Below are positions 7,596 to 63,699 of a stretch of 64,000 nt of DNA, one piece after another (within the stretch, counting starts at the first letter, position 1; each line of letters begins with the position of its first letter). This stretch comes from Dicyema japonicum (taxonomy: Eukaryota > Animalia > Dicyemida), in the NCBI GenBank assembly GCA_011109175.1, contig RDEW01000019.1, positions 779,823 through 843,822 of the forward strand, given 5' to 3'. The position numbers and the translations under genes were made by a program. Under the pieces are notes generated by a model, which did no database searches, was not told the DNA's origin, and saw only the letters and a list, made by a program, of their open reading frames with translations.

Positions 7596-7614
7596 AATAA
7601 TTAATTAACTCAAC

Positions 7615-10990: not shown

Positions 10991-11014
10991 AAATAATTGA
11001 GTGAGATCTTCTTT

Positions 11015-13559: not shown

Positions 13560-16759
<3,200 letters not shown>

Positions 16760-23720: not shown

Positions 23721-24046
23721 ATAATTAATTAACTCAACCATCAATCCAAAGTGGTCCCCGCCGACATTATCGTCTTTGCGTTGCCTCTTACGATTGCAAC
23801 AGAGATCAACTGGAGAAGCCACCGGGTCTCACGTGCGTCGTGGCTTTTTAGTGTAGCTTGGAGTCCAAGTTTCTATAAAAAGCGAAGTGATTTTCAACTT
23901 ATTCCTCCAGTTGTCAGACCACAATGAGATAATTATTTAACGAATAAATGAAACAAATGATTGAAATGCGTCATAGTATAAATTTACTAAAATTTAACCC
24001 CAAAAAGTGCAATGACAATGATTAGTTTTATTAGCAGAATAATGTG

Positions 24047-24809: not shown

Positions 24810-27800
24810 TTTATTAATTTACGCTGCAGTTATTTTATACTTTAAAATTTCGTACTTTTTTAAATTTACAATGTACTTTTCAATTGACGAATATCGAAGA
24901 AAATTGTGTTTAGAGGAAGGGTTCTTAGAGGGTCTGTTCCTATTCCACTTGTATTTAATTGTGATAAACCAAATATCAATTTGGAGCAGTCAATACAAAA
25001 AGGATTATACACATGACCCCAGTTAGAGCACCAATTAAAAAATTCCCAAAAAACGAGGGCAAATATTTTTCATGTTTTTATTGTGAAAAATGTTTCTCGG
25101 ATAGTCAACAAAAGCAAGAAAAGTAACGACTACTAAATGAGGACTAAATTAAGACCTTGGAAAATCTAAAGTATCTTTGAGTTTGTATAGATTAAAAAAG
25201 ATATTTCAAAGGTTATATCAGTAGAAAATAAAGACGTTATCTTAAGTTCATTCTACTCTTCATTTAAATCAGCAGTCTTTTCTGTTTATGCATTGAACTA
25301 TTACCGATTTATTTTTCAGGGTGGTATGAAAAGGAAAAGCAAATTTGTTGGGCTTTTCGATAGATCGAGTAGATATGCTATCAAATTGACTTAAAGATTG
25401 AAAATCCAAAATATCATCAAAATATGAGTGTGATATAAGAACAATTGACAATTTTTATACAACAAATTATTCATTTTTTACGTGAAGATGTGAAGTAGGT
25501 TATTCAACGGAGAAGAGATATATAGTTAACCCCATCAGCCTCCATTCAAACTCTTAAGACGATTTTTAGTTAAAGGAACTTTCTCGTTTCTCAAAATCAT
25601 ATGTATACTTAAGGTTTCGCTCCCTACTATTCCTCTAATAGTTTTTTCCATCCAGCTTTCCTCCTTGCACGCTTCCGTGATCCACGTCTTCCGCTGTTTT
25701 CATTTCCTCCCCAATTTTGGTGCTATTGACATAGAAGAAGCGTAATTCTCTGCCGTCCACGAAAGCCCTCAATTCTATTTTGGTTGAAGATGTTTTCCAC
25801 AATAAGGTAGCACGTAGAATATGAAAAAAGTCGCCAGCGAGATTTTACCACTTACTCGTTTATAGCCCCCACATTTTCATATTTAGTAAAGAGTCTCGTT
25901 TTTATATTTTTGGCCATAAATACGAGGCTATGGTAACTTCACTACTTGAATAATTGAAGGTGTGGATACCAGCGAAATTCTAGTTGCAGGACTGGGGAAG
26001 GGTGAACCTAGAATGACGCGATGACTATTTCATAATATTCATGATCACGGCGAGTAACTCCCATTACGTGTTCATGCCAGCAGGTCTTCATGGATACCTT
26101 GTCATGACAACTAAATACGATCGAAATACGTCATTAGATTAAAGAATTATTATTATGTAGAAAAATTATGGTAAAAATCAATACTGACAGTAAAATTTAG
26201 AATTTAATAATAAAATTAGTGATTCTAATAGCACTACCTATTTGGAAGAGGACCATTTTCAAGCGTTCAACCTTCACTATTTTTTAACGTGGGTCATCTT
26301 ATGTCAGGACCAGATGTTGCATCATAGTCAGGAACGTTTGAGAATTAAAAATCTAAAAATAATCCTGTTGTTTTTCCTCAAGATGGGCCTGTCCAAATAC
26401 CTCATAATTTTGTGCCAAATTCAGAAATACTGTATCCAATACTTCCGCGTTCAAAAAGATCGTGTATCAAGAGTCTCTGGAATCAATCGCTTTTTATATT
26501 CACAGAGATGAAGACATTTGATTAAATAGAGGTACATCATCCATTATCCAGGCATTTAGCATGTCAAGGTTAATTTGTATTCTTTCTGTGGCCTTCTGGA
26601 TGTCCTGATCCCGCGAAGCTAACACAATATCATCCGCATAGGAAAATAGAACATCATTATCAGATTTAAGAGTCGGAAGATCAGCCAGAAAGAGGTTAAA
26701 TAGAGCAAAGGATAAAGGAGATCCTTGAGGGACTCCGTTGGGGAGGAGCCGTGAGATTGATTTCAGTCCTCCAAGGCAAACACGTCCCCTTCTTCCACTT
26801 AGGAAGTTAGTGATCTAAAGCTTTAGCTTCCCTGGGATCTCCGATTGAAATATTTTTCTCGATAGAATTTTCCTCGAGACTGAGTCAAAAGCTTTATGTA
26901 TGTCGATCTAGCAGCATTGTTTTAAAGTGTCTCGGCTTGGTTGTGAATCCGACTCGAATGAAGTCGCCAATGTTTGCAAGTATGTAGACGTGGATCTCTC
27001 ATTTTTGAATCCATGTTGAAAAGGCCTCTCTGGTAAAAATTCTTTTATTCTCCCGAGCACAAGTTTTTCCAGGATTTTTGATACCTCACAAACTTTCAAT
27101 TTATTTCCCTCACTTTTCAATAAATAATTGAGTGAGATCCTCTTTCAAAAGATATTTATTTTATTATCCCAAAAATCACGAGAAAGAGGATAAAAACGAA
27201 TTGTCTTATTAAGTGATCCCAGTGTCCATACCGTCCTTTTCTTGCAGTTAGTTTTGGATTCCTGGGTTAATCTCCACAGCGGGGAGGGTTTCTTCTCATA
27301 TCTCGGGCAGGCGTCCATATATAATTTGATGTCCGACCCGAGGGGATAGTCAGAGGACTTTGCCATTTTAAGGAAGTCCCGGTGACATTCCGTAAGGTAT
27401 TCCATGATTGGGGAACGTTTAGTGTTCTCCGTAGAAACGAAGTGGAAGTCATTTTCGACGATCTCAATAGTATTGAGACATCGATTTTGTAAAACTTCCA
27501 GCTTGCTCTGTGCTGATAGTGATAAAGGGCAATCCATGCAGCACAGGCGTACTCGATACTCGGCAGAACAAATTGTTTGTGAAGAAGCTCTAACGGTGGG
27601 CGAGAAGATATTGGAGAGCGAGTAAAAGCCTTGAGACTTTCAATTTTCTTTTGGATCCTCGCGGTTACTAGGTCCACTTGATGAGTAAATGTGAGGAGGG
27701 GATCCAGGATGACTCCAAGGATTGAAAGCGTCTTCTTAATGGGAAGCGAGGAGTCATACAATTTTATTCTTGGTGTTGCCCGTATATCTTTTCGTCCTGA

Positions 27801-28812
27801 GGTGAGCGTCATTACATGTGACTTTCCTGGTGATATATTCGAACAGTTCTCAGGAACGAAAAAACCATTAGGTTTAATAAATCTTGCACGGTCCGTGTCT
27901 CCTCCTCTATTCTTCGATGTTTCACTGCGACCACGAGATCATCCGCATACGATAAAAGAATTGTGTTTTTGGTGGTTCAAAGATATGAAGTGGGAAAGTA
28001 CAAGATTATCTGAGATTTCGAGTTCCACAGTTGGAAAGTACAAGATTATCTTTAATCTTTGAATTCTGCCAAAACTGAGAAATTGAGGTATTCTGAAAGT
28101 TAATTTCATAAGATGTATTATTTTTGAGATCTATTCATTCCTCTCTTAATTCGGAATCGGAGTTTAAAATTTTGGATTTGAATGAATCGACCATTCACTG
28201 AGGAATATTAAAGTTTAGCAAATCCTGAAAACTAAAAAGAAGTTCAGATTTGGGGACTTAGAATAAACCCAAATAATAAGAATCTGCTTTAATAATTAGG
28301 GACTCAACTTATCACGAAGAAATTTATTTCACGCTACACAAACTAACTAATCACTTGATCCTAGCACGATCGATCAGGGACCTCATCTTGTCCGATGCTC
28401 CTCCCTCAACCCTACGCAAGCACGTATTGGTCGCATGACTGGACCTTCGCAGTCACGACGGTGTGTTCCATGATTCATTCATATCATGGCTTCAAGAGGC
28501 ATTGGTGGCTAAAACTCTCCAGAAATCCAGCGTTCCGTGATTTTGGAGGCTTTTTTTTCGGCTAGCCTCGATCTTCAAGACATTTATCCAAGAGATGAAC
28601 GGGCCCGAGATATCACATACGTAAGAGATGCATGGTTCAATGTATTGTTTGTATATATCACTCAAAATAGGATGATATCCATATTTCCATAAGCCTGACA
28701 TTTCAAGACATAATTAAATTTATGGTAGTCTTCTAAAAATGTTAGATATTGAATTTTTATTAATTAAATAATAATTTTTTAATCTATTTTTATTTTCCAT
28801 TATTTGTTCTTT

Positions 28813-31800
28813 GGCGAATTTCATATAGTTTGTTGTGGTGTTGACATGTCCGTTTCTAATCATACCGAGAAATCGAATCCTATGGGCCTTCCTGCAAAAT
28901 CAAATAAAGAAGATAGTTTAGTAGAAGCAGGACCGTCGTCTGTGGGGCTGGATAATGTCACAAGAACTAATATCAACATCGCTGGGAATATTGGTGCCAA
29001 TACTAACTTGCATTCATTATCTGCCATTATTGAAGAGGTCCACTGTGTCTCTGAAGCTGAGCGGGTATCTCAGATTTTTCTTGCCACGAAACAAAGATTT
29101 GGAAGGATACCTAGAGGTGGCTGGAACCTCGTACTCAAAAAGTTCAATGAAAAGTACTCCAAGAGTTCCAGTCTATGTCAACTAAAAAAGATGCTGAAAC
29201 CTGAAAATCGGAATAACAATGTAAAAGGAGCGAATGTTTCAAAGTGCAAAATAATACTAATGTGGAAATTTCCACCTTCAGAAATTGCCTTGAGGAACTA
29301 AAAGTACAAATTGAGAAAATTAAGTCAATTCCGAGGGATACTCGAAAACCAACACCCAAAATTCAGAGAAAGTATGTCAGAGTTAATGTTTTGTCGGGAC
29401 TAAATTCTGCAATATATTATATTACGAAAGATAATCCGCCTCAAGATATCAATCAAATTACTGATATTCTATATGCTGCACAGTGTGCTTATATGACTTT
29501 AACTGCGAAGGTTAAACCGCAAAGTACGTGGTTGGAGAACACTGAAAAGAAAATCTCAAAGCTGATGGCAGAACTAGAACTTGTCAATCGCTTTTCCAGA
29601 CAAGCTCTCCCTGTGTATGAAAAACAAAAGGTTATGGATGTTCTTTGTGCCTATGGATACAAAAGGGCCAAAAAGGGGAGGTTGCCAGGATTGAGGCTCT
29701 ACTATGTGACCTTGTAAGAATTAAGAAGAAGCAAATAGCTGTACATCATTCGAGGAAGAACTTTCGCAAGGACAACTGTTGTTTTGAATTAAATCGAAGA
29801 AGATTTTATCGGAACCTATCAGCAAGCAATGAAGTGACGTTATTTCGATGATGAGGATTGTATGTCGTTTTGGGAAAAAGTGTGGTCTAAAAGAAAAGAG
29901 ATGAACGTGCCATATGACAGTGTGGGTAAAGTAAATACTGGTATTGAAGGCATGTTGCCAGAGTTCACAAATGAGTTTATCCTGGATGTTATTAAATGGC
30001 TCCCTGATTGGAAGGCGTGTGGATGCGATGGCTCATATAACTTCTTCATTAAGAAAATGGAATCTTTACATGGCTTTTTATGTACTGAGATTAACCGAAT
30101 TATTAATGGGGAATATATGCCTGAAAGTTGGTTTTATACTGGAATAACCTATTTAATTCCTAAAAAGGATGATTGTGAGACTCCTAATGACTTACGTCCT
30201 ATCACGTGTATGCCAACTTTATATAAACTTATTACCAAATGTGTTAATTCCAAACTCTCAGATTTTGTGGATTCGTTTGGGCTATTATCTGACAATCAGC
30301 TGGGAACGAGGAAACATTGTCAGGGCGCTAAGGAACAGGCCCTTATTAATCAATGCTTAAATAAGGAGTATGGAAACGCCCTTTATTCTGCTTGGGTGGA
30401 TGTGAAGAAGGCCTTTGATTCTGTTGACCATGAATTTTTATTTCATGTATTGGACTGCTCAGGAATACCCCGTTGGATTGTAAACTTTGTAAAGACCATA
30501 GTCAAGAAGTGGACTGTAAATCTCCACTTAGATGGAAGAAGAATTGGTTCTGTAAAACTGGGACGGGGAATTTTGCAAGGAGATTCATTATCCCCTCAAC
30601 TATTTGTTATGGTAATGGAACCCTTGAGCAGGACCCTTAACTTTATGTTCCCAAGACTCCAAATTAATCAGGAGGATCCTAATACACTGACTTATTCTAC
30701 AAATCATTTGTTATTCATTGATGACCTAAAGATATTTGGGCTAAAAGAAGATACTGTTATTAAAATGATGGAAGTTGTTCGCGATTTCTTTCATGTTGCC
30801 GGCTTGGAGATGAATTCGGAAAAGTCACTGTCTAATGTTAAATCGTTATCATGTTGTGAGAATCTGGAAGGAGTCAGTGGATATCGATATTTGGGTGTTT
30901 TTGAAGATGAGGGAAGTAATGTTCTTAAAAGCAAAGTTATGGAGTCCATACTTGAAAATGTTAAGAAGAGAATAACCATGCTTTCAAAAACAAAGTTAAA
31001 TTCTGTGAACTTATTTCGCGCAATAAATGAATACGCAATGTCCCATATAACTATTATATAGGATTAATTAATATTGAACCATACGAATTTGATGATATTG
31101 ACCAACAAATACGGCAACTGCTTACGTCACTCAAGTTGCACCTCAAACCTGCAAATAAAGAGAGGCTGTATTTGGACAGGAAGACTTTTGGAAGAGGACT
31201 TTCCTCGATTTCATTAAAGAGCGAATTAATACTTTTCCAGTTTTTTAAAAGTTTGGAAAAACAGTCGACTGTGTGTTTGCGAAGGTCGGGGATTCTGCGA
31301 GTAATAAAAACAAAAAAATGGCACTTGGCTACAATCGCAGGATTTCTTGCCTCTAAATATGCAATTGCCGACAGGGAAAGCATGGATATTAAGTCCCTCA
31401 AGGACACTCAGAAAAAATATTTATTAAATAAAATTTATTGCAGAACACTACACTCAATTATGTTCAAATGTATTGATGAAACAAATGTCGACCTATATAC
31501 TTCCTCAGAATGGTTATCCAAAGGAAATAACGGCCCACGGAGCGAAGCATTGTACTGTCTTTTGCAAGATAGGAATTTGTTTTTTGCACACACGGGGTCA
31601 TTATGCAACCATTGTAAAAAAAGCAAGAAAACTGTTGATCATTTGGCCACTCAGTGTGGAAAAATGCTAAATAGTGATTATCTCCGAAGACATAATGAAG
31701 TGGTAAAGTGCATCCATCTTCATCTTTGTCGAATTTATGGAATCAAAAGAAGCAGGAAATTGAAAGGACATTCGGTTCAGTCAATATTGACGAATCAAAA

Positions 31801-32405
31801 TGTCGAAATTAGAGTTGACTCGTCGATTTTGACAGAAACAAAAGTCCAATACAATAAACCTGATATTTTCGTGTATGACAAAATAAAGAAGGAAGTAACG
31901 TTAATTGAAGTGGGGATTACCTCACAAGATCGACTAAAGCAAGTTGAAGTTGAGAAACTTCACAAATATGACTTGCTTGCAAATGAACTTTGGTTGCTCT
32001 ATGAATGCCAAGTGAAGATTATTCCAGTGGTTTTGACATGGGATGGAGTTGTTCAAGATGCTTCAAGAATCATATGGATAAATTATCTATTGAAGAATCA
32101 ACGAGGACTTACATCCAATCGGTTGTACTGAAGAGAACGCTCGAAAGTATGCTCATTGAACATAAGCATGGGATGAAGGTATACGATGAAGAGTACGCCT
32201 CTGCTACCTCCCAACTTGTGGAACTGGCATGCCGTGAAGACAGCCCACTGGACTCAAACGGAGATATTTTGACTGAATCTGATGTGGAGATGCGGAGTAA
32301 CAGGGAGGTTATGGCACACTCTTCTTCTAAGAGAAGAAGAGGGATTACCAACAATCTGGATCAAAATACGCTTAATTAATTAATTAGTTAATTTATTCGT
32401 TATTA
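28813..32405 (+). mobile_element. RLE-type non-LTR retrotransposon (R4/Dong-like), apparently full length, with ~5 frameshifts
   Basis: RT motifs LRPITCMPTLYK, VDVKKAFDSVDH, GILQGDSLSP, LFIDDLK and YRYLG; CCHC finger CNHC..TVDHLATQC followed by RHNEV; KPDI..IEVG..EK..KY endonuclease. Flanked by an 11-bp direct repeat ATTTGTTCTTT (28802-28812, 32406-32416). Confidence 0.9.
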
Positions 32406-32439
32406 ATTTGTTCTTTCCATAAAAATTAAAAAAATCAAT

Positions 32440-36213: not shown

Positions 36214-36390
36214 CGTATGCTTCCCGGTTGGAATCTCATGGCTGTCCATTCCGACCGAAATTTCACGTGTCTACAATGCTTCCTGGTTTGAAGCCGTCAT
36301 CAGTAACACCTCACTGCGAAACCGAATTACCTACAGGGAAACACGCAACAAAAATAAAGAAGTTTAGAACATGCCTCGGCCTTCCAACAA
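36214..36390 (+). mobile_element. SINE-like family B (tRNA B-box-like head)
   Basis: CCCGGTTGGAATCTC head; the body aligns with the reverse complements of 57440-57630 and 43752-44290. Confidence 0.6.
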
Positions 36391-36665
36391 TTAATTAACA
36401 TAACTTTTCTTTACTCTTAATATCAGGTGTGTCTTGCATGTGCTAGTTGCAAGTATCTTGTAAAAATGCTACTGAAAAAATTCGGATATTAAGAATTGAT
36501 TCCAGCCAATAATGAGGACATTATGTTTGACCTCAGTCGAGAGGAAGTGAGCACACAAAGACAGGCAAAAAAGAATAAAAATAAAAAAATCATTTTTTAT
36601 TTTTTAATTATAATAAAATTATGACTGTCGCTAAGAAAATTTAAAATTGATTTTTAATGAAATTA

Positions 36666-42862: not shown

Positions 42863-43751
42863 CAGTTGCTTGGAGACTGAAAATATTTAATTTCAATTAA
42901 TTATTACTATTTTTCGTAAATCTAAATTTATTAAACATTAAATAACCAGGCACCAACTTAACATACGTGTGACGGAAATGGAGGTGGGCGACTAACTTCA
43001 CCTTTTGGAGGATGGATTTGGTCGGCACAAGGAGACGTTCTCCCTGGGTTCCTTCATTGTATTAATTAGTTGTGAATGTTTGTGCTGGGCTTACAAAATA
43101 TTGTAACCCTTGGTTGGGTTGATAAATAAATCAGGTGGCAGCTATCAAGAGACAGTGAGCCGCGACGGTGGAGGTTCCAAGGCGCTAAAGAATTATCTCG
43201 GAAGAATCCGGGAAAGGGCTATCCATGCGGAAGAATCCGAATCAGTCCTGAAGCTGAACATCCTCCGTAGAAGAAGACATTTCCAGAAGACGGTGGGATC
43301 CCTGGCTAATTTACTCGAGGAGATTCCGGAGTTACTAGAGGTTGGGATCATTTAATTAATTCTTTGACATATTCTTTCTTGATGAAGTTTCTAAATATCA
43401 TGTTCTCCAGAAATATGGAACAATCTCTTACAATTGGAATTCGACAAAAATATTCCATATTTAAAAAAATCTATCACGGTATCCACCATTAGTTGAACAA
43501 AGTTCTTGTGATGTTTCGTAAAGTTAATATTGCACCACAGACGTTCCTCTTTCAATAAGATTCAGAGACTGGGATTATTGTTGTAGTAGTTCCGATGCCA
43601 ACCAGTATAATCAATGTCCACGGAAATTGAAAATTTCTGCACTACGCAATGGTAATACTGCACTTTACGAAGAACCACATTAGCTATAGCTCTTCTCATG
43701 CAGGACACACACTTTATTTTAAGTAAAAAAGTTATCATAGCTAATCGATGG

Positions 43752-44290
43752 TGGAGAACCAGGGAATGCTCTTCACTTTTTTTCTTCGTGTTGGGTGAGA
43801 GTTTTTTTGTAGACGATCCGGTTCTGCGGTAAGATGTTCACTGATGACGCCTTCACTCGTCAAGCCAAAGCATCGTAGAGATTAATGTTGTGGCCGCGTG
43901 GCGCCATGTGGTGATGCGTGGTTAATTGGTTGAAGATTCCTGCTTGCTTGTCTGTTCCTTCTCTCTCTTCCTAATAGAGTGGCGTCATGTAATCCACCTG
44001 TCTAGGTGACGCCCAGTGCCAGGCCGGCATGAAAAAGGATCATTTGCTCTTCCCCACTCCACTGGAGGGGTTTTCACAACTGCATGTAATGGACGTCTTA
44101 CCCTTTATGCTGATTCCGGATGGACTCTGTTTCTGTAGAAGTGGAAACTGGATACACTTAATTAGTTGTTTACTTTAACTTTTTTCTCGGTGTATCCGGG
44201 GTTAATAAATAAATAAATCGTAGATGCATGGAACCTTCAACCAGAGTGTACAGCAATAAGATTTGAACTAGGGGTTATCAGGCCTTTTGC
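43752..44290 (-). mobile_element. SINE-like family B copy interrupted by a family A insertion
   Basis: Removing 43880-44216 and one ATCGTAGA copy restores continuous alignment to 57440-57630. Confidence 0.75.
43880..44216 (+). mobile_element. SINE-like family A, complete copy with LINE-like termini
   Basis: 8-bp TSD ATCGTAGA (43872-43879, 44217-44224); conserved core; tail CTCGGTGTATCCGGGGTTAATAAATAAATAA. Confidence 0.85.
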
Positions 44291-45020: not shown

Positions 45021-45249
45021 GGCTAGTACAACCCCTTCAAGAAATGATTTGTTAAATGATCCACATTACATTTACTTTACAGAAAATTAAATTGCTGGTG
45101 ATTATTTGGGGGACAATTCTGATAGATACGAAATCTGTTAATTATTTTCCCGGGATCACCGGATTAGAGAAAAGAAAATAGTCCTCAACTAAGTTTCACG
45201 ACCAAAATAGTCCTCAACTTTCCAAACATCACATCCACTCATATCCGCC

Positions 45250-45350
45250 ATTATAGAAATCCCTTCAGAGGAGTAGGGAGAAGCCGACCAGGTAGTGGAT
45301 GTCTCTTTGGATAGGTGGATCAAAAATAGAATGCAAGGAGCAGAAAGGAA
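45250..45350 (-). mobile_element. Family A core fragment
   Basis: GATCCACCTATCC..GAGACATCC..CCCTACTCC..GAAGGGATTTC on the minus strand. Confidence 0.5.
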
Positions 45351-45850: not shown

Positions 45851-46119
45851 AATACAATTTTATTAAAATTGAAGATAGTTGTCACGAACATTGCTTAATT
45901 TGACACAATCAATTATCGATATCAATCAACGGTTAATTGGTCGAGAGGTAGAGGTGGGACTAACTGTAGTGTTACTCAGTTTCATATTGCATGGACGGAG
46001 GAACTGTCGATACACGTAGGATCCAGGTTCAAATCTGTTCAGCCTAAAATTGATAGAACTTGGATGATATCTGTCATAAGTTATTATTCTTTGTCGATAA
46101 CCTCTGGCAGCTGAAATAA

Positions 46120-46380
46120 GTTTTATCAAGTTTCCTTTGCACAGCATTGCGTCCTTTTCATGTGTCCACCGTTATGGGAACTTTGCTGGAGTTGAGAAGT
46201 GAGGGATCCTTTTTGATCCCGGCCAGGAATCTGGTGTTTCCTGAGTTAGGTAGATCCAATGACTCATCTAGGAATTGAAGAAGGCAAATAGCGGAGAGAA
46301 AATTCTTCGACCACACAGGTAGTGGTGTGGGAATCGACCTCATAGCTAAATGAGACACGAGCAACACAATAACCACTTCT
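46120..46380 (-). mobile_element. Family A member with tRNA-like head
   Basis: AGTGGTT..GAGGTCGATTCCCAC (A/B-box-like), then core GGCCGG..AAAAAGGATCC and tail AACTTGATAAAACTTATTTCAG. Confidence 0.6.
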
Positions 46381-46569
46381 GGTCAGTCTATGTAGCACAA
46401 AATTACACTTAAAATTCAAAGATTTTTTATGAATGCTGTCCCAGGAACGAGTTTTTACATTTTTTCAATAAGTCATTTTTAATGTTGAATTAGCACTGAC
46501 GTAGGTGTATTTCAATTTTTTTAAAACTAGGGTGTTACTGATTTCAAGATCAACTGGTCTATGGCCTAT

Positions 46570-46900
46570 GAAGATCTCTAATGCAAACCTTTATAATAAA
46601 TGAAAATCCGGCGTGCTGTCAGATGATCTTTTCAATTCAAGATAGAGTCTCTTGGCCACGTCTTACGTCTAAATGACCAGGTCCCCGCAAATGTCGCAAT
46701 GGACAACTACTTCGCACACACAGGAGCCGGATTCCGTGGAAGGCCAAGAACGACACCTCCGACTATCTTGAATGAAAAACCTATGGGCTGTTGGTATGAG
46801 ACTAACTTCGACGGACGACCTGGACTACCTAAGAGAACTAGCGCGCAACAGAGGATCATGGTTGAGGCTGACGGAGAGGATGATTAGAAATACGGCACAA
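46570..46900 (+). mobile_element. RTE-like LINE 3' fragment
   Basis: LGHVLRL..PANVAMDNYF..GFRGRPRTT..DDLDYLRELARNRGSW. Confidence 0.7.
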
Positions 46901-47049
46901 AAGAAACTTAAAACGGGATACTTGGAGCACCAGAAATTTCATTTATTCAAAGCATCTGGTTTCTGATGTCTTCTGAGTCCGTCACATCGTCCATACTCGT
47001 AAAAAAAAAAAAAACGCGAGTTTCCGTCCTTCATGCCAAAGCGTGCTTT

Positions 47050-47095
47050 TTGACCAGGAAAAATTTTACAAAAACAAATTGGCTCTTCCAATAAA
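47050..47095 (+). pseudogene. 46-bp inverted copy of a CEP290 exon segment
   Basis: 41/46 identical to the reverse complement of 41125-41170. Confidence 0.75.
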
Positions 47096-47994
47096 AAGAG
47101 TGAGGTGTACCATTATTTCGTTTGTTGTTTCTTCACCCACATGTAAACATCCTCTGATAGCATTCTGCTTCTCTGAGCCTTTTCTTAAGGCTATTTTGAG
47201 CCCTGCTGGTTTTTATTCGCTTCATTTGACGGATCAAATTAGAGGAAATCAATTATTATTAAAAATGTCCGCGGAACCAGAAAAGTTAATTAATTTGAGA
47301 TTCCAATTTTGCCATGCATCTCTGGATACGAGAGGAAATCAATACACACAAGAAATCAAAACAGAAGAATACACACAAGAATCAAACTGTAGCAAGGGAA
47401 ACAATCGTCTTGTCGACAATAATCATTGGGCTGGGTCTAAAAATTCCGGTAACCAAGGCATAATACTCTTCGCACGCAAGCTGCGAATGCGTGACACCGT
47501 CGTTATAACAAGTAGAACGTCACTGACCGTGCTTCATCACGAAGAGCTGCAAAGGAATTCACAACCCACCTGCAATCGATTAAAACCCGTGCGCTCGAAG
47601 TCTTCAGTTCTGCCAATAGAACACGATGATCGCTATCAGCCGATCTTGTCTATGATAAAAAAAACATCGAGAAGAAAGCGAATATAGCTTAATAACGTGA
47701 ACTCTATGGCTTGTATCTGCTCCCCCTACAGCATGCTGCCCAAGACGGCTCCCCTTATGACTTCCCTCTAGGATAAATAGACATTTCACGAGGTACGCCC
47801 CACCTCAATCTTGGCCAAATTAACTTCTTAATAAAAACTTTATTTAAAACATAACAGAACTCCACCCAACAATTATTGGTTACCATTATCTTAAAATATG
47901 TGATAATATTGACTAGTAATGACATTTTGATTAAAAAGAATAAAGGATTATGAATTATTCCACAAATAGACTAACTGAACTGAAGATGAGATCT

Positions 47995-48150
47995 AGTTTG
48001 CGTCATGGGATCAATCTATCTCAGGAGAGTAGTCTGGTCGACATCCAAAAATGATTCCTCCATTCCCTACTCCAATGGAGGGGTTTCAACAATGGGGGAT
48101 ATGGAGGACGCAATGGTTTTTCCGACTGGGGGAACTGGATAAAACCTCTT
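47995..48150 (+). mobile_element. Family A core plus alternative tail
   Basis: GCGTCATGGGATC..CCCTACTCCAATGGAGGGGTTTC..CCGACTGGGGGAACTGGATAAAACCT; the tail matches the reverse complement of 58190-58220. Confidence 0.65.
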
Positions 48151-48711
48151 TCATGTATATCCGTTGTTGATAAAAAACAGAATTGAAAATGTTTAAAATA
48201 CTTTTACAAAAAGTTAATTAGGAAACCACAATGTTCTATTTACTAGTAGATCTATTATCATTGATTTTAATTTTAAAGATTATGAGGTAAATTCAAATAT
48301 TCTTAGAACCAACATGTTACGATAAGCAAATCATTAGAATTAAAGAATAAATTCAGTGACTAAATAATTAAAATCTGTCCAAGTATTTTAGTTCTCTGTT
48401 GTTGGCGGGTTTGTTAGTAAAAGGTTTATTTTTTTCTTGTAAATGACTAGTATTAATAGAATTGTTGTACTTTGAATTATCTATGTGTGGGTTTCTCTTT
48501 TGATCAGAGTCTTTGCTTTCATGGTGATACTTTCTTTTTGTCATTATTACATTTTTTAAATCATAAGTAATTTATTTAATATGGTTGGACATTAAATAAA
48601 ATAAAATAATTAATTTTACAAAAAAATATTTTAATTAATTCTAATCATTAATTTTCTCGGGCGAGGCTAGAATGACTTTTCCCGAACATTGGGCTCGCGA
48701 TCATGAGAGGT

Positions 48712-51649
48712 GAAATTTGAAAATGTTGTTAGCGTGGTGTCATGTGGCTCACCAGAAATGGTGTCACCCATTCCAAAATGGAACGAAAAGAGCCAACAGC
48801 TTCTCCCCACCGTCCGGTGGTCCTTTCATCTCCTGTGTCTTCGACCCTGTCTGGTGTCCCCATTTATCCAGACTTTTGATTCTTCTATGTGGAGACGTCG
48901 AAACCAATCCTGGTCCATGGAGAGGTTTTACAATTATACAACTGAATACGAATGGGATCAGGAAGAAAATCTTTGAACTCCGGGCACTCCTCCGCGAAAA
49001 TGAGGCTGACCTCGCTTTAATACAGGAGTCCAAGCTATCTCCCTCCATACCAACACCCTCTTTTCCCGGATACACAGTGATCCGTAAAGATCGTCAGGGA
49101 GGACGCGGAGGAGGACTACTTACTATTATAAAGAACGATATTCCTTTTATGGATACAACTCAACGAACCTCAGAGCTTCTTGGCTCCGACAAGACTTTGG
49201 AGCAGATTACTGTCAAAATCGAGTTATTCCCGTCCTTTTGGATCCATTTGGCTAATTTATATATTCCTCCACAAGGATCGTGTCCGTCATCTTACACCCC
49301 TGATTTATCACGCATTTCAACATTGAAAAATCTACTGTTATGTGGGGATCTTAATGCACGACATCCAGTTTGGCTCACTTCCCAATCCTCTGATAACCGA
49401 GGAGAACTCATTGCAAATTATCTTCCTGACCTGATTATACTGAACAACCCTAACTCACATACGAGGACCCCATTAAGGATAACTGATAGCTGCACATCTC
49501 CCGACTTAACATATGCTCACCTTCTCTGGCTGGACTCATTTCCTGGAACGGGCTTCTCCAGTGACCACAATCCAATCCTTCTAAAACTGAGAGGTCTTCG
49601 ATGATACAGGAGACGACCGGCGGAATCAAAAAGATTCAAGGATTATACGAAGGTTGACTGGTCTGGTTTCAGTAACCTTGTGGATAAATTCTTGGCCCGG
49701 AGATTATCCTCCCAATACGCTCTATTGATGAGGCCGCAGAAATTATCAGCGCTGCCATTCAGAAAGCTGACCATATTTTTATTCCGTCATACAAGAAGTT
49801 TATTCCTACCCTCAGTTCTTATACAATAAGTCTTATAAAACAAAGAGACCGGCTGAAGAGATGCCATCTGTTGGACATGAAGTCTTTGACAGCCCTCAGA
49901 CAACTGAATAAAAGCATCTGTCAGAGCATAAAAGAACACAAGGACAAGATATATCAGCATCTAGTTAACCACCTAGATAAGAAAAGTTTATCCCGACATT
50001 TCTGGAAAACACTTGAACAAGTCGAGTCGAAGCAGGATGATGTAGAAGGAACCGGAAAGTCTTCTCCTGAACACTTATGCCACTTACATCCTATCACCCT
50101 TATGAAACATTACGCTGGAATTAGCTTCAAAACCTTCTCGAAACACCTGGACATTAGGGTGCGTGCCCATAAACTGAAGAAGGAACCTTACCACCAACTA
50201 TTTTCAGATGACTAAGTCTTGGATGTGATCACCAGATTAAAGAGCTAACGGGCGTGCGGGCCTGACAAAGTATCTTCTATTCACCTAAAACACCTAAGCC
50301 ACTACGCAATTGGATATTATATACCGATATTGAAGGCTGGGAAACCAGAGACAGAACCTGCCTCCTACAGGCCTATTCCAGTTACCATCACACTGTCAAA
50401 AATTATGGAGAAACTTGTATTATCAGTCATTATTCCGTATCTTCCACGTCCTATATTTCAGCATGGTTTCCTCCGCGGTAGGTCCACCGCTACATACTTG
50501 GCAACCCTATCGCAGTTCATTGTCGACGGTTTTAACACCCATCCCCCACCTCACAAACGCACAATCTTGGTTTCTATTGACATCAACAAAGCCTTTGACA
50601 CTGTTTCGAGGAAAATCCTGGTTGGAAAAATATTTTCTACTAATATTCGTCCGAATGTGAAATTATGGCTGGCCAACTTTTGGTCTGGAAGACGTGGAAG
50701 AGTAGTCAGTGGTGATCTCAGATCTAGATCACGATTACTACCGAACGAGGTACCCCAGGGGTCTCCACTTTCACCAATTCTATTCAACCTATTCCTACAC
50801 GACCTACCTAATGATCGAGACGAAGATTCCCTGCTATTATCCTACGCAGACGATGTAATCATTGCAATACGGAACCGCTCGACGCAAGTCGCATCCCTTA
50901 AAACTCAGACAAAATTGAACACTCTCCACGATTGGATTGTTGGCAATCGACTTACGATTTCTGCAACCAAGGCATCTGTTCCACCTTCACTTCGGACCGT
51001 CGTTCCAAGGATGAACCGAGTATCTTTATTAATTCCACTCGGATTCCAGTGACAAGGTCCCCCACTGTCCTTGGAGTCAAGTACGACAGTCTCTCAATTC
51101 GACTCCCACGCAACAGACATGATTACCAGGGGCCTCCAGAAAGTTAACGTTATACGCGCCCTTGTTCGGAGGACCACGAGGAACATGGACTTTTCCGTTT
51201 CTACCTCTACCAACAAACAATCGCGCCTGCCATTGAGTATGCCTCCGTTGCATGGAGATTCGGCTATCGGAGTCTTGGTCCAAAGAATCAACTCGATACA
51301 CCGGAAAACAATCAGTATGCTTTGCCCACGTAATGGATCAACAGTCGACCCACTACTCATGGAAGCTAAGATACGTAGTCGTGGCTCCGGATTTCTTCGC
51401 GTCTGTGAGGAAGATAGAAATCCGCTTCGCCTGATCCTTCCATGGCAAAAGAAAACCGATTGGATAAGAAATTCCCCTCCCCGATCGGATTCCTCTGCAA
51501 GACCGAGAGAAGGCTCTTCCGGAAAGTAGTGGGGACGATGGAGATCACAGACGTCGAATGGCACAATGATTGCGAGGACTGGGATCACCTAATTGTTGAC
51601 TCTTTTGTCTTTCTTTCTCGGTGTTCCCGGGGTTATTAAAATAAAATAA
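48712..51649 (+). mobile_element. TSD-bounded single-ORF APE-RT LINE with an N-terminal 2A-like motif (I-group; Ingi/Vingi-like architecture), frameshifted after the APE
   Basis: 12-bp TSD ATCATGAGAGGT (48700-48711, 51650-51661); LLILLCGDVETNPGP; QLNTNGIR, IQESKL, GDLNARH and SDHNPI (APE); SYRPI, QHGF, IDINKAFDTV, PQGSPLSP and YADD (RT). No ORF1 or RNase H seen. Confidence 0.9.
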
Positions 51650-52899
51650 ATCATGAGAGGTAACTCAGATTGCGTGCCCAATGCCTGCAGTCATAATGAA
51701 ACCTCGTCTTAACTAACTTTTCTGATTATTAAAATAAAATTTCATTCCTAGTAATTCGAATTTTTAAATAATTTTAAAATCCATGACTGGACATAATGGT
51801 AATCTTAACGAGGGATTCTGTTAAGAAGGTAGGAAGATCCGTTTCAACTACTGTGTCGTGCCAGAAGGACTCGTCATCTTACAGGTGGGATCTGTTTGAC
51901 GTTCTCGGCAGAAAACTCGTCAGCTTTTTTCTGTTACTTCACTAATAAGTCCCATTTGGAACATTGGTAATATTATGGTTATTGGATGTCGATCGATACG
52001 AGAGAGTTTTTCGATCGAACGATGTTGGGATTACGTCATCATAAGTTTTGAGAAAATAATCGATGAAAGTAACAAGGAACATAAAGTGAGATCAAGGAAG
52101 GTGTTGAAATACCCTGTTATGAAAGTTGTTCGAGTTGTAATAGGATGAGCTCCTCTTTTATAGCTTTTTGGTCAGTCAGCTAAAACTTATTTAGGATTCC
52201 ATATAAATTTTTAACCTTTTTTAGTTTAGCCAGTTTGGGGGAATGTTGTTTTATAACGGCAACGGAGAGTCAGCTAAGTTAGTTAAGTTAATGCACGTCC
52301 GTGTTGCTAATAAACAGTTTTTATGGATTTGCTTGTGCCATGTTTTTGACTATTCTTGGCGTTAGCCTTCTCCATCCCATTCGTCGTGGTGCTCGCCTCC
52401 TGATCTCGTCCAGATCGTCTGCATCAATCAATCCTCCGCAAGTGTCTTGGCTAACGGAGAGTGAAAGATAAATAATTATTAAGTTGTTTAATTTAAATAT
52501 TTATCTTTTTCACAAAGACGGGACGAAATAATTAATTTATTAAAATAATTAATTAATAACATTGAAAAATAAGCTAATTATTATTGGTTAACCAAATATG
52601 ATTGGCGCAATAGAAATAAAACATGTCTGACATCCGGCGACTCATGTGGTCGTTAACCCTAACCCTCTACTTTTTCTTCCCTTTTTATGCCATTTGGGGA
52701 TGATTTACTAAATTTAAATGGCGTAGGATGTCCACAATGTATTACTAATAACAAATATTGCAATTATTATTTGTGATACAACATTATAGCAATTGTACAC
52801 GAGACTTAAAACTCTCTAATATCAGTTGCTACATTTATGACCAATCATTTTAAGTTTTCGATGTCAGTGTAATTTTTATATGAACTATTTTAGAGTTTT

Positions 52900-53150
52900 A
52901 CGCGGGTAGCTTAGTGTAGACCTGTCTCCCGAGTTGCGATTAGCTATGGTTCTTATTCCCAGTGCTACCTACTTGGTAGAAGGATTCCTTTCTGCCCTTT
53001 GTGCGTTTAATTACATGGAGGCGTCATAGGATCCGTTTAATTAAGGAGACACCCATTGCCAACATCCAAAAAAGACACTTTTTATTTCAGTTGAGGGGTT
53101 CCTACACTGGTGGATGGGCGTGATGCTCGCAAAGCTGCGTTCCAGTCATA
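52900..53150 (+). mobile_element. Family A member with tRNA-like head
   Basis: GCGGGTAGCTTAGTG..GGTTCTTATTCCCAG, then TACCTACTTGGTAGAAGGA, GGCGTCATAGGATCC..GGAGACACCCA..GAGGGGTTCC. Confidence 0.6.
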
Positions 53151-53389
53151 ACTTTATTGTAGCGAATAAAAGGAACATTATTACTAGGGACACTCATGTC
53201 TCATTTATTGTGATAAAATTTAGAGGAATGATTTCTCTTACAGTTGTTAATGGTTTGAACTGATGTCGCAAGTTTCCGCGTGACATAAGTTATTTGATGG
53301 GTAATTAAGTTTTTAAACCACTTAAAGATAATCTCATAATGTCGATTGAAATGGGTTAATCGATAACTGAATTGGATAATACTACGGCT

Positions 53390-54990: not shown

Positions 54991-56759
54991 ACAAATTAGT
55001 CTTTAATTCGCAGAACATATTCATCTTGATTTGTTATATATTGATTTAGTGTTCTTTGACATGAAAGTAAATCAAACACGTTTATGTTAATTAATTGATT
55101 ATGGTTGAAAGAAATTATAGCATTTTTTCAAGCCTGTCTGAGACTATACAGTGCTTTCATAATCAGATTTACGTACAACGCTCCCAACTGTGAATTTGAC
55201 TAAACAATGTGTTCCAAGGAGGCTGCAAACCCTTATTGGAGATCTTTAACCAAGAAGGTCTACGATTGTATTCCTATTATAAGAATAGGAAATTATCATA
55301 GAAATTCGAGATCGGGAACCTTTGGTGGGTTCTACGTCTGAATTTTCAACCCCGACAACTATGCAACGGAAAATTACTCCACGCCAGCAATTTTTGGAAA
55401 ATATCTAGGAAGATAAGAATAACCCCACGGACTGTCTTCAACGATGATCTATCACAGATAGAAATTATTAACCCCTGAAGATCTGTTAAATCTCGTAAGA
55501 AACCGCATAACAGGTGACATGATGAATATTAGTCTGAACTGTGACAGGTAGGGAATATTGATTACTATTATTTCTCGAATAGTCCTTGCAAAATTTTTCA
55601 CGTGTTGCTTTGCGGTTATGTTGTATGCTCCATTTAAATTTAAAAAGACTGACAACCGCAAATTAGTCACATCGTACGATAACATAGGTGCTGCCCAGTA
55701 ACCTGGTCCACAAAGAGGTCCTAACCAAATGGCGGATGCTGCCCTAACGTTAACCAACTCTAATTAAGTACCGTCATGGCCATGATCCAGGTAATTAACG
55801 GAAAGGGACTAGACAGTAAAGTGTGTGAAAACAAAACCTTTTCCCTGATAATGGCCCCATATGCACCGAAACCGATGGCCAACAGTTGAAGTACTATAAC
55901 TCCAATATGGAGTGCATGTGAAAGCATCTAGTAAATTGTTAACGACTGTTTCTAATGTTTCTCGATGTGCTATAGCTCACTGCATCAAAATTGCGAGCTG
56001 TTGTTGTCATTTAGGGTAAACGAGATAGTGAGTAGGCACATTCTTGAAATACCAAAGTTCCCCTGGAAAGTTGTAGGATATCATGAAAGATTCATGCATT
56101 ACTTTGGTCATAACTGATATTGTGAGGTATGAGACTACTGTTGATATGAACAGGATTTTCTTAATTCTTTATAGTACGCAGACTATTCATGATGAAATGG
56201 CTTTTAAACTGCGAAAGTTAAGTGGTTAGCAAGGTAACATTATGGCTAGGATCCAAGACACTGAGCTTAAAACCCTTGATGAATACATCCCAAATGTGAA
56301 ATTTTGGTTAAAAGGGAAACCATTGACTTCGATGCGGTCTACGTTAAAACGTCACAGGGCGTCACACTTAGACGTTAACGAGCTCATTAGAATAAATTTG
56401 GATTAAAACAAGTCTAGATCGATATTCAGGGACAACTGTTAACTTATGAGGACACGTGCTCATACAGAATGCAGAACAATCAGTTTAAATTCAATCGTGA
56501 CTCTTCCGTGGAGAAAAAATTGTGTGCACATTCCGAGTAAGAAATGATTGCCGCTTGAGTATGTAGATGGTCTGTGCTCATGAGGGGGTTATTCTTCATA
56601 TAATTAAACAGAGTAATCAGTATATGACTGAGTCGTGTGGCATTGGTTGGATCCATAGTGCGATGACAGGTAACATTGCACGCTTTCGAATTGGAAAACC
56701 CTGGAGTTGTGAAGTGTTTAATTTCTTTAACAAAAAATCTTGTAGTAATATTTTGAGGG

Positions 56760-57200: not shown

Positions 57201-57439
57201 TGATAATAAAAGTTTTTTTTCTCGACTATTGCTTTATTAATAACTCTCAGAGAAATGGGGACACGTTAAACAAAAAAATTCGGTGCTAAATCATATCTTC
57301 CGTTCTATATCGCCGGATCATGTCCTCCACAGCCTGTGAATAATGCACAAATAACGGGAGGATCATACCACCTTCTTAGCAAAATTCATATTTTTAGTCT
57401 TTTTTGAAGTAAAGAATAGTAATGATAACTAATCGTTGA

Positions 57440-57630
57440 GGGAGAACCAAGGAATGCTCTTCACTTCTTGTTGTTGCGTGAGTCCCTTATAGACGATCCA
57501 GCTCCACAGTGAAGTGTTACTGATGACGTCACTCGTCAATATAAATCATCGTAGGTGCGTGGACCTTCATCCGGAATGTACAGCAGCGAGATTCGAACCA
57601 GGAGCCATCAGTCTTGTTACACACCATAAT
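57440..57630 (-). mobile_element. SINE-like family B
   Basis: Canonical B-box CCTGGTTCGAATCTC on the minus strand (~57590-57604), followed by the family B body. Confidence 0.7.
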
Positions 57631-58179
57631 GAATTTAAATTTATTTTCCCATATCGAATAAAATTATTGATCTCCTTATTATTTATTCCATTCCACCTTC
57701 GTTGATTAGTCTATTGACTAACTTTGGTTTAACCAATTGTTAATTAAAGTAATAATCGAGTAGAAAACTAAAAACCGAATAACGGAAACTGAGAATAACC
57801 CGCTTCTATTGCGTAAAATATCCCTTCATGCTCAATTAAGGACCTCATCTTGTGTCAGATTGAACAAAGAAAGTGTCAGATTGACAAAGTATGCTGGTTT
57901 AAATTATTTCCGCCTTAAAAGTGACGATCTTGAACGCTCATCTGTCTGTGAGGCGCGAATGTTATAAGATAAATTTTCCTTACTATATTTTCACTATTAG
58001 AATGACTTTATTTTGTGTTTAATTTCTCTAATTATTTTTGAAAAATGAACTTTAGATGGACATGGGTTGAATATACGAAATTTCAGAACAAAGAAGCGTC
58101 GCATTAACTCTGAGTTTGAATCTCGTCTGGCACAAAATTTGGAGATCTTTGGAAAACCCATTTTTAATAACTCCAGATA

Positions 58180-58425
58180 TATACCTGAAATAGGTTTTAT
58201 CCAGTTCCCCCGGTCGGACTATAGATCCTCATTAAGTATCTCTTATTATGGGAACCCCTTGATGAAACAGAAAAGAGAGACGGATGCCGGCCAAGTATTG
58301 GGCGTCTTCTGAGTTTGGTGGATCCAATGATGCCCTTAGAAAAAAGGCAATCCTTCGACTACGTAGGTACGTGTGGGAATTGAGCTTACAGCTAAATTGG
58401 CAACATCACTAACCACTACTTTATT
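58180..58425 (-). mobile_element. Family A member with tRNA-like head
   Basis: AGTAGTGGTTAG..AGCTCAATTCCCAC, then GACGCCCAATACTTGGCCGGCATC and tail CCGACCGGGGGAACTGGATAAAACC. Confidence 0.6.
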
Positions 58426-58502
58426 TGGTCACAAAGTCACAAACTCCCCCCGTTTTAGAAATATTACAAGAAATTGAGAATTTAAAAAAGAGTCCAAATT
58501 AA

Positions 58503-61110: not shown

Positions 61111-61269
61111 TCTTAATTAATTTTAATGACCATCTCCCAAAAATACATGTTTTATACTGAATTAAGCAACTCCACATCATCGAACACAAAATCATTGTCG
61201 TCCGTTCTACCAGACGTTCGTTTAGGTAACTCCTTAAGTCTAATATCCCACGATTGTGGTCATCAGTGT

Positions 61270-61555
61270 ATTTATTAACCCCGGATACACCGAGAGAGAA
61301 GTTAACAAAACTAATTAAGTGTGTCCAGTTTCCACTATTACATAAACGGAATCCGTCACACAAGTCCACCAGAACCAGCATAAAGGGTAGAAGACGTCGT
61401 TTCCTTGTAATTGTGAGAACTCCTCCAGTGGAGTGCCACCTTAGCACTGGGCGTCACCTGAGACAAGTGGATCACATGACGCCACTCTATTAAAAGTGAA
61501 GAGGAGAAACAGAAGAAACAAACAGAAATCTTCAATCAAGTAGCCACATGAAACC
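61270..61555 (-). mobile_element. Family A copy with LINE-like tail
   Basis: Reverse complement aligns with 43905-44216, with an internal deletion of the AAAAAGGATC segment. Confidence 0.8.
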
Positions 61556-61759
61556 AAACGATATATATTCATAAAAAATTGAGATATTTTTAAGCGTCTT
61601 TATTGCCCTTCCTACACAATACGAAGTTGACTGACAGTTGGCAAACATAATCATCAATTGAATCATTTTCCATGTTCATGTCAACCGAAATGTCATTTTT
61701 TGACAATTTTGTTCAATATTTCCTTTTAAGTTTTTCGCCCCTTGCAACCTACATCAGAG

Positions 61760-62690: not shown

Positions 62691-62999
62691 TCATATGCTT
62701 ATGGGTAACACAAGAGTGGTTCTAACTAACTATTGTAAAATCACGTCATTTTTAATAATTGACCTTCGCTGAAAAGTCAGTATTTAGAAGTCTTCACCTC
62801 TTTCCCCGGAGAGAATCGTATTCCGGGATTTTTCTACGCTCACTAATCATATTAAGTGTAGAAAAGGTTTAGACATCGTATTGGAATGACCATCGGAAGT
62901 TCACCTTTCAGTTTTTATTGACAAATAACCAATTCCTTACTTGATGCTTTATTATTTTTTAATAACCCCTAAAATAGCTAAGACAGACTTTGTTCAATT

Positions 63000-63230
63000 C
63001 TCCCGTCGAAATGGGACGCACCCTTTCAAAGAATCACGTCCATTCATATCTGCATTGTGGAAACCCCTCCATTGAGTAGGGGAGAGAGGGATCCTTTTTA
63101 GATGACAGGGAGGCATTAGACGTCTCCTATGACATGTAGATCACCTCTTTTAAGCTGAAAAGGGAAAGTCCTCCGACCAAGTAGGTAACTGCGTAGTATT
63201 CGAACTCACATCACCACTACCACTACCTGA
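63000..63230 (-). mobile_element. Family A member with tRNA-like head
   Basis: GAGTTCGAATAC B-box, TACCTACTTGGTCGGAGG, GGAGACGTC, AAAAAGGATCC and CCCCTACTCAATGGAGGGGTTTCCACAA. Confidence 0.7.
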
Positions 63231-63699
63231 TCGTCTTTATTTTCCAACGTAGAATGAAACAGTGAATTGTAGGGTAGTACCAAACATAACAAAGTATCAA
63301 AAATTAGTTTACAGTAAATTATTATAAAATAAATAGTCAACCAAGTTTTTTGTTCATAATTTCCAGATCTCTTTGTTTAATGAAATATTTCACCTAAAAT
63401 AAAATGCAAGTTAAACCCACGACTTTGAACAATTTGATTTAAAATTATCAAATAATTTTTCACATTTATTTTTGTCTTCATTATTTTCCGTTAAACAAGT
63501 AAAGTAAGAGTCACGATGTTTCCAACAATTCTCCCGTGTTTCTTTACTACTCATTGATGGCCACGAGAAAATAAACGTTTTATATAATAATTTAAATTTT
63601 TTAATTTAATATAATTTTTATTTTAAGATTTCAGGATATCTGCAAGTCAAACTTTTCAGACCAGTTAGTTTGATCCACGATCAGCTGTGTACGGATGGA

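Follow-up and report, generated by a model that had tools for sequence, protein, structure and literature searches.

A high-copy retroposon with a probable chimeric, LINE-derived architecture and a core shared with the 5' end of a 2A-bearing LINE

We analyzed a window of 64,000 nucleotides (the whole stretch of DNA under study), which is eukaryotic with a G+C content of about 37%, and focused on a 337-bp retroposon, named copy A, with the exact limits 43880–44216 on the plus strand. Our analysis showed that its conserved core is homologous to the 5' end of a LINE located in the same window, and that this LINE also resembles copy A at both ends. A chimeric, LINE-derived architecture is the probable explanation of copy A. 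The element would be a four-part recombinant, composed of a head from the extreme 5' end of the LINE, a linker shared with SINEs, a LINE-derived module of about 100 nt, and a LINE 3' recognition tail of about 65–85 nt. Its family, which is very abundant and non-autonomous, would be copied by the reverse transcriptase of this 2.9-kb 2A/APE/RT LINE. The coordinates of all features are listed in Table 1.

The limits proposed earlier for copy A from the letters of the DNA proved to be exact. An 8-bp target-site duplication (TSD), ATCGTAGA, was found on both sides, and copy A is absent from a paralogue of the flanking repeat near 57400–57620, where ...ATCGTAGGTGCGTGG... reads straight through. Because this paralogue is uninterrupted, it is an empty site for copy A. 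The empty form, with the joint 43875->44222, was also present in Logan contigs from DNA runs of the same organism. Copy A has both a TSD and a precise empty site, which characterize a non-autonomous retroposon mobilized by a LINE, and it has a 3' tail in common with an autonomous LINE, as is expected for the same class of retroposons (SINEs in the broad sense). It is not a purely bipartite LINE derivative of the RIME, NARTc, or Vingi-N type, in which nothing but the two ends of the parent LINE is present, because the linker of other SINEs and a second 5' module lie between its LINE-like ends.

The host site of copy A is itself another repeat (43714–43878 and 44217–~44300), with paralogues at 57400–57620 and 36222–36415. 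On its minus strand we noted GGTTCGAATC, which is box-B-like, together with the linker TGGTTGAAGGTTCC and the motif GGCGTCAT; this repeat probably represents a further SINE family that belongs to the same superfamily and differs in its body. A candidate hammerhead in it (CTGATGA, ~43843) was dropped, as the GAAA core is lacking.

Table 1. Positions of the retroposon copies, the LINEs, and the module helices. Positions refer to the window unless a contig is named.
Feature	Position	Strand	Basis or remark
Left TSD of copy A, 8 bp	43872–43879	+	direct repeat; empty-site contigs
Copy A head, like LINE 5' nt ~11–36 (AATGTTGT..GCGTGG.G.CATGTGG)	43880–43915	+	alignment, shuffles
Copy A pyrimidine-rich linker, TTGGTTGAAGATTCC...	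43926–43974	+	alignment
Copy A core module, ~100 nt	43975–44079	+	alignment, covariance model
P1 of copy A, GGCGUCA/UGACGCC	43981–43987/44007–44013	+	
P2 of copy A, UAAUCC/GGAUCA	43990–43995/44037–44042	+	
P3 of copy A, CCU/AGG	43997–43999/44004–44006	+	
P4 of copy A, GUGCC/GGCAU	44016–44020/44026–44030	+	
J4/2 of copy A	44031–44036	+	
Extra downstream hairpin of copy A	44052–44070	+	
Copy A variable spacer with conserved GGACGYC box	44080–44149	+	alignment
Copy A tail, LINE 3'-end homologue, terminating in (TAAA)n-like repeats	44150–44216	+	homology search
Right TSD of copy A, 8 bp	44217–44224	+	direct repeat
Copy B: inverted tail piece 2773–2835 (−), head and core 2859–3043 (+)	2773–3047	.	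TSD, alignment
Copy C: LINE-like head, core with internal deletion, LINE-type tail, 72% to A	61269–61560	−	
Copy D: box-B-like head remnant, core without P1 5' strand, second tail type	62950–63245	−	
Copy E: no recognizable head, core, second tail type	47993–48165	+	
Copy F: box-A/B-like head, core, second tail type	46060–46400	−	
Copy H: box-A/B-like head, core with deletion, second tail type	58150–58450	−	
Copy I: box-A/B-like head, decayed core, another tail	52895–53190	+	
Copy J: 5'-truncated, core without P1 5' and P2 3', LINE-type tail	45110–45340	−	
Partner-type LINE (2A + APE + RT, decayed), 2,938 bp	48712–51649	+	TSD, ORFs, domains
LINE's own 5' module, SINE-core homologue	48730–48831	+	nhmmer, profiles, covariance model
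Octopus LINE	L002 (VCDQ01001009.1) 5983–~8870		(AAT)n tail

The partner LINE has a 12-bp TSD, ATCATGAGAGGT, at 48700–48711 and 51650–51661. Its ORFs contain the 2A motif GDVETNPGP, an APE endonuclease, and a reverse transcriptase, and the 2A motif directly adjoins the APE domain on its upstream side. No RNase H or further domain was detected in its 3' ORFs; Ingi elements have an RNase H, whereas Vingi elements lack it. We regard this LINE as a decayed copy because of its frameshifts.

Both ends of copy A were compared with those of the LINE. The local alignment between the copy A head and the first 55–60 nt of the LINE had a score of 15, which was reached by 0 of 5000 shuffles. In a second test, the heads of copies A, B, and C were each found to match the LINE 5' end (p = 0.002, 0.017, and 0.001, respectively). 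At the other end, element positions 271–334 of copy A matched LINE positions 51582–51645 (79% over 64–66 nt, E = 2.7 × 10−6), and the tail motif TTTCTCGGTGTNNCCGGGGTTA occurs three times in the window versus 0 expected. These results bear out the earlier suggestion that copy A starts and ends like the LINE; the likeness covers about 35 nt at its start and about 65 nt at its end.

SINE2 elements have a tRNA-derived head with a Pol III promoter, and it could be supposed that the head of copy A is a diverged head of this kind, whose likeness to the LINE 5' end is coincidental. A box-A-like TGGCGCCATGTGG does lie within the copy A head, and a 9-nt string, GTGGTGATG, is common to copies A and D; moreover, many contigs diverge upstream of 43893, and the first 13 nt are perhaps atypical of the family. 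However, no tRNA match for copy A was obtained with ARAGORN (default settings) or with Rfam at E ≤ 10, and the heads of A, B, and C, which match the LINE 5' end, did not match the heads of SINE copies D, F, H, and I (p > 0.1), which are mutually alike. In copy C the match to the LINE extends on into GGCT(C)AC, and TTGTTAGC is identical in copy B and the LINE. Thus, a tRNA-derived head seems quite unlikely for copy A, and its head is better compared with the LINE 5' end. There is also what we take to be a likeness of this head to the 5' part of a tRNA-Arg; a tRNA-Arg origin was dropped, as no tool backs it.

The heads of several other copies had been called tRNA-like. We found that they carry box-A- and box-B-like motifs only, which were detected neither by ARAGORN with default settings nor by the Rfam tRNA model. 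With a very relaxed threshold, ARAGORN called tRNAs almost everywhere, and therefore this run is no evidence. At 43893, 65 contigs of run X1 part from copy A upstream, and the preceding letters are mostly TTA, which also precedes this point in copy B and in the LINE (GTTAGC). It follows from this divergence that the extreme 5' end of the family is heterogeneous, or unlike that of copy A.

The middle of copy A had been described as not LINE-derived, and this description was wrong. When the core of copy A was used as a single-sequence query, nhmmer matched the LINE 5' end at 48729–48812 (E = 5.6 × 10−4), and the profile of all copies matched L002:5996–6088, the corresponding part of a LINE from Octopus sinensis (E = 1 × 10−8). 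The profile built from two LINE 5' ends only, those of the window and of O. sinensis, matched core B with E = 1.9 × 10−8 and core A with E = 5.3 × 10−8. In the opposite direction, the profile of SINE cores only matched the octopus LINE 5' end (E = 3.5 × 10−4), but the LINE of the window itself was missed by this profile at E ≤ 1. The stretch in common covers about LINE nt 17–117, which is nearly the extreme 5' end. Furthermore, a covariance model found 10 copies in the window, at 2940, 43975, 45251, 46172, 47993, 48730, 53014, 58246, 61411, and 63055, and the match at 48730 is the LINE's own 5' end. The LINE scored 58.5 bits and the octopus sequence 62 bits with this model, both being members of its training set. 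Copy A thus has a LINE-5'-homologous middle, like the SINEs with LINE-5'-derived bodies described by Kojima (2018, PMC5786205).

According to the sequence-only reading, the core would have no relation to the LINE; it would be a deeply conserved SINE domain of its own that was later captured between LINE termini. It is true that cores A and B are nearer to the cores of other SINE copies (48–52 bits) than to the LINE (30–31 bits). In the alignment, the linker upstream of the core (~50 nt in copy A) is likewise common to the box-A/B-headed SINE copies and missing in the LINE. However, the matches of the LINE-only profile to the SINE cores overturn this reading, the SINE-only profile reaches the octopus LINE, and LINEs and SINEs show covariation in the same helices. 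The module also has the same position in two LINEs whose endonucleases are only 42–49% identical. An independent core is accordingly very unlikely. That the core is part of the autonomous LINE had been named beforehand as an outcome against this reading, and it is what we found, as the core is homologous to 48730–48831. The interpretation is thus only partly supported, because its key premise, a non-LINE core, was refuted.

The homology could also have arisen in the reverse direction, if the module was born in a SINE and gained by the LINE through recombination. Kojima has discussed such a possibility for another element, the Ceph-like piece in Ingi-3_AC (2018, PMC5786205), and SINE copies are far more numerous than LINE copies. 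Nevertheless, both LINEs translate the module in the frame of 2A, and no more than ~17 nt separate its start from the LINE 5' end. The octopus LINE also has it, and within 13 kb of octopus sequence no SINE-type copy was detected with the covariance model. We consider an origin in SINEs improbable. The octopus copy suggests that the module may be ancestral in the partner LINE lineage. As a comparison with named SINE core domains, two Ceph/CORE strings quoted in PMC5786205, the Ceph/RTE 23-mer and CCTTGGGAAAG, were sought, and both were absent from the copies.

For the LINE endonuclease ORF, the closest relative among proteins is encoded by O. sinensis contig VCDQ01001009.1 (L002), with 42–49% identity. 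This single entry was the sole close relative of the LINE among 5.8 billion proteins, and a search with the octopus protein gave no further close relatives in the protein collection. In the octopus LINE, the module (L002:5996–6088) lies exactly at the ORF start, upstream of GDVEQNPGP; in the window LINE it lies within the ORF, upstream of the 2A motif. In both LINEs (48723–48920; L002:5983–6180), the ORF is opened by an ATG within the conserved 5' motif AATGTT and crosses the RNA module before it enters the 2A motif. The leader peptides of the two LINEs (~60 aa) are unrelated and partly in different phases. Because the homologous nucleotides of P1–P3 are read in different codon phases in the window LINE and the octopus LINE, protein coding cannot account for their conservation. 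Our results suggest that the role of 2A is to dispose of a peptide that the RNA element forces on the LINE.

The module was not found in the related or 2A-bearing LINE contigs L001 and L003–L008, four of which are noted as 2A-bearing; a match in L005 (E = 0.21) was judged spurious. Neither of two metagenome pattern scans, one directed at the LINE module and one at the SINE core, gave a match. Within the LINE contigs and metagenome scans, the reach of the module is the window's copies and the single octopus LINE. The octopus relative, together with the micro-intron genes of the window, is compatible with an old shared or transferred LINE lineage in a cephalopod-associated organism. If the window genome belongs to a cephalopod parasite, the octopus-only relative would suggest that host and parasite exchanged a LINE long ago.

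The earlier claim that the core recurs with swapped heads and tails was confirmed. Nine further copies were found, with at least two head classes and at least two tail types around one conserved core of ~100 nt. The heads are LINE-5'-like in copies A, B, and C, and box-A/B-like in copies F, H, and I. In copy B, a single 11-bp TSD, AATGAAACTCC, at 2762–2772 and 3048–3058 encloses both orientations, and element positions 200–274 are missing, which is a deletion of 75 nt. An inverted piece within one TSD is the product of twin priming in LINE-1 insertions. Copy B is a twin-priming-type inversion, which is a signature of target-primed reverse transcription.

We also estimated the abundance of these elements from contigs. 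Over copy A, the summed contig word depth, which is not a calibrated copy number, was ~2.5–2.6 million versus ~400–600 for the unique flank in run X1. The ratio of element to flank is several thousand-fold, and it was similar in runs X2 and X5. The LINE 5' part had a summed contig word depth of ~0.2–0.4 million. These depths show that the copy A family is very high-copy and that the LINE is high-copy. The older box-A/B-headed copies at 46064–46457 and 48034–48230 were few-fold above background at ≥85% likeness. High-copy repeats were also observed at 46458–47048 and 47246–47442, with a summed depth of 70,000–260,000 versus ~400 for unique sequence; an ORF at 47043–47687 had no Pfam match.

The module was aligned with MAFFT in 11 sequences, on which both the helices and the descriptor were defined post hoc. 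The helices follow the order P1-P2-P3-P3'-P1'-P4-P4'-P2', which corresponds to a nested double pseudoknot. Over the 11 sequences, 79.4% of the helix cells were paired, versus 39–47% when the partners were slid by 1–3 columns, and 10 pairs of the five named helices were changed on both sides. P2, the helix that makes the pseudoknot, was 86% paired, with double-sided changes in five of its six pairs. A covariation analysis, which the sequence-only reading had put forward as a check, gave a score of 0.195 versus 0.143 in shuffles for these 11 sequences and post hoc helices, and the score was reached by 1 of 500 shuffles.

The sequences of the helices differ among lineages. P2 is UGGCUC/GAGCCA in the LINE, UGGUUC/GAACCA in the octopus LINE, UGAUCC/GGAUCA in copy B, and GGGAUCA/UGAUUCC in copy E. 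P4 is complementary with lineage-specific sequences (UUCC/GGAA, GAUAC/GUAUC, GUGCU/GGCAC, and GAUUCC/GGGAUC). With the HDV-order descriptor, the dinucleotide shuffles that were equal or better numbered 1 of 300 for copy A, 1 of 300 for copy B, 0 of 300 for the LINE, and 8 of 300 for octopus. An A-rich J4/2 that follows a C, C(N)AAAAA, was found in eight of the nine copies retaining this segment (B, D, E, F, H, I, LINE, and octopus). The LINE has CGAAAA at this place and octopus has CUAAAAA, and copy A has U instead of C; its UG, where CG is expected, looks like a deaminated CpG. An alternative pairing between the leader and J4/2 was dropped, being present in octopus and not in the window LINE.

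The conservation may alternatively reflect a DNA-level internal promoter, like Pr77 of L1Tc, or recent common descent, with an HDV-like order that was over-read from few sequences. In L1Tc, Pr77 is both promoter and ribozyme (PMC3383444). RNAalifold predicted no consensus structure for the full set of 11 sequences, the single-sequence folding energies were no better than those of shuffles (z = −0.4 to −1.3), and the post hoc definition of the helices also speaks for this explanation. However, compensatory changes between lineages were observed in P2, P4, and P1, and the descriptor beats shuffles in four sequences. In addition, the roles of promoter and RNA fold are not mutually exclusive. Taken together, a promoter or recent descent without an RNA fold is rather unlikely, and a conserved RNA element remains our preferred explanation of the module.

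The possibility that this RNA element is a ribozyme was also considered. In the whole window, Rfam found no ribozyme, tRNA, or SINE-related family at the gathering score and at E ≤ 1, and a local search at E ≤ 10 gave no ribozyme family, including those of HDV type, and no tRNA or SINE-related family. A G·U wobble at the cleavage-site end of P1 was not found, the first pair being G–C in six sequences, and no consistent partner for P1.1 (1–2 bp) could be placed in L3. Upstream of P1, a leader of 22–24 nt is conserved in the window LINE, in the octopus LINE, and in the heads of A and B, and the start codon of the 2A ORF lies within it in both LINEs. Because the leader is present in TSD-bounded copies, their RNA templates were uncut at that point. 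In the contigs, the 5' discontinuity with the best support in the SINE family falls at 43893, and no pile-up of ends occurs at the core. The retention of the leader and the contig ends at 43893 are indirect evidence against efficient self-cleavage. Kojima has pointed out that a ribozyme within a headed SINE would cut off the head that bears the promoter (2018, PMC5786205).

Real self-cleavage by the module thus appears doubtful. A better-supported reading than a ribozyme is that the LINE 5' end contains a conserved RNA element with a double pseudoknot, and this element may be a weak or ancestral ribozyme. A further scenario, in which a competent HDV-like ribozyme would have turned into the core of a SINE superfamily, working downstream of a head in a regulated and not constitutive manner and explaining the need for 2A, is tentative and on balance unlikely.

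The principle of this architecture has been published. Kojima has shown that 5' regions of RTE and Vingi elements serve as the middles of SINEs, whose tails are subject to exchange, and that SINEs can be seeded by bipartite LINE derivatives (2018, PMC5786205). For example, SINE2-1_AMi contains Vingi-2_Gav nt 2–74 behind a tRNA head, and WALLSI, CoeSINE4/5, and SINE2_Gav contain 5' and 3' parts of RTE (PMC5786205). Copy A is therefore not the undescribed system that it had been thought to be. Like the SINEs of Kojima, the present elements combine a head of small-RNA type, a LINE 5' body, and a LINE 3' tail, exchange heads and tails among families, and have a bipartite LINE derivative as the likely intermediate (PMC5786205). 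In contrast to those SINEs, the small-RNA head of A, B, and C is replaced by the extreme 5' end of the LINE, so that LINE 5' sequence occurs twice, and the borrowed region begins almost at the LINE 5' end and comprises a complete ribozyme-like fold. Kojima expected that ribozyme-bearing 5' ends would be excluded from headed SINEs (2018, PMC5786205).

The organization also recalls the trypanosomatid pairs L1Tc/NARTc and ingi/RIME. L1Tc and NARTc have in common the 77-nt Pr77 hallmark, an active HDV-like ribozyme (PMC3185411, PMC3383444), and in L1Tc it is followed by a 2A sequence directly before the endonuclease (PMC3185411, PMC3383444, PMC3708506). As in these pairs, the LINE has a single ORF, a structured hallmark of ~80–100 nt at its 5' end, and a 2A directly upstream of the endonuclease (PMC3185411, PMC3383444, PMC4035085), and the 5' hallmark and the 3' end are common to the non-autonomous partners. 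However, L1TcRz, the HDV-like ribozyme of Pr77, cleaves at element +1, whereas 22–24 conserved nucleotides precede P1 here and any activity is putative. Moreover, the hallmark is also found here in the middle of headed SINEs, and the likeness to Pr77 that we describe is one of organization.

The module was also compared with the HDV-like ribozymes at the 5' ends of R2, RTE, Baggins, and other LINEs (PMC6765202). The predicted helix order P1-P2-P3-P1'-P4-P2', a C in an A-rich J4/2, which is U in copy A, and a site at the LINE 5' end that overlaps translation initiation are shared (PMC6765202). The differences are that the module has no HDV-type match in Rfam, that the pair at the cleavage site is G–C, that L3 and P1.1 are atypical, and that J4/2 is longer (C-N-AAAAA). 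Odon et al. have reported 2A peptides in LINEs of the Ingi clade, which are of APE type (2013, PMC3708506), and the partner LINE resembles these elements in having 2A directly before APE. No ribozyme is mentioned in that report, whereas the peptide before 2A is encoded here by the RNA module, and its phase is not conserved.

What is new here is the module with its LINE lineage, and the use of LINE 5' sequence twice in one element. A complete ribozyme-like fold that is predicted within headed SINEs, and that overlaps the coding region before 2A, is new as well.

A mechanism for the family may be proposed. In the LINE, the module overlaps the beginning of the ORF; it encodes a junk leader peptide, which would be parted from the enzyme by 2A. 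For R2, 5' RNA has been described to act in translation entry or in the binding of LINE proteins, and such a role has been proposed for L1Tc (PMC6765202, PMC3185411). The module could likewise be a 5' RNA element of the LINE for translation entry, for binding of the LINE protein, or for both, and SINEs bearing it would gain the same LINE machinery. As to the history, the LINE 5' module may have entered a headed SINE through bipartite LINE derivatives, which is the route of Kojima. Tails may then have been exchanged among related LINE lineages, and finally the small-RNA head may have been replaced in A, B, and C by the LINE 5' end, for example by template switching as reverse transcription came to its end.

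How the conserved core domains of SINEs arose has long been a puzzle, and in the present case the core was traced to the structured 5' module of the partner LINE, which is also conserved in the LINE of another animal. Kojima's idea that SINE bodies come from LINE 5' regions, based on RTE and one Vingi example, would thereby be extended to a 2A-bearing LINE lineage. The case also runs counter to the expectation that 5' ends of ribozyme type are excluded from headed SINEs. As a function of the SINE core, our analysis suggests a double-pseudoknot RNA that possibly recruits the LINE machinery or cleaves itself, and the same module hints at why such LINEs carry a 2A at the N-terminus.

Several other features were observed in the window. 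A second LINE, unrelated to the first, is located at 28802–32416, with an RT ORF at 29862–31061 (RVT_1, E = 3.8 × 10−29). Matches resembling C/D-box snoRNAs were below threshold at 56271–56338 and 28106–28175 (SNORD50, E = 0.37; snoJ33, E = 0.32). A segmental duplication of ~11 kb relates 1–1555 and 3104–12531 to 17639–19194 and 19219–28659 with 96–98.5% identity, and its first copy has an extra 1.5 kb (1556–3103) that holds SINE copy B. At 13560–16759 lies an ISWI/SNF2-like gene with many short exons and very short introns.
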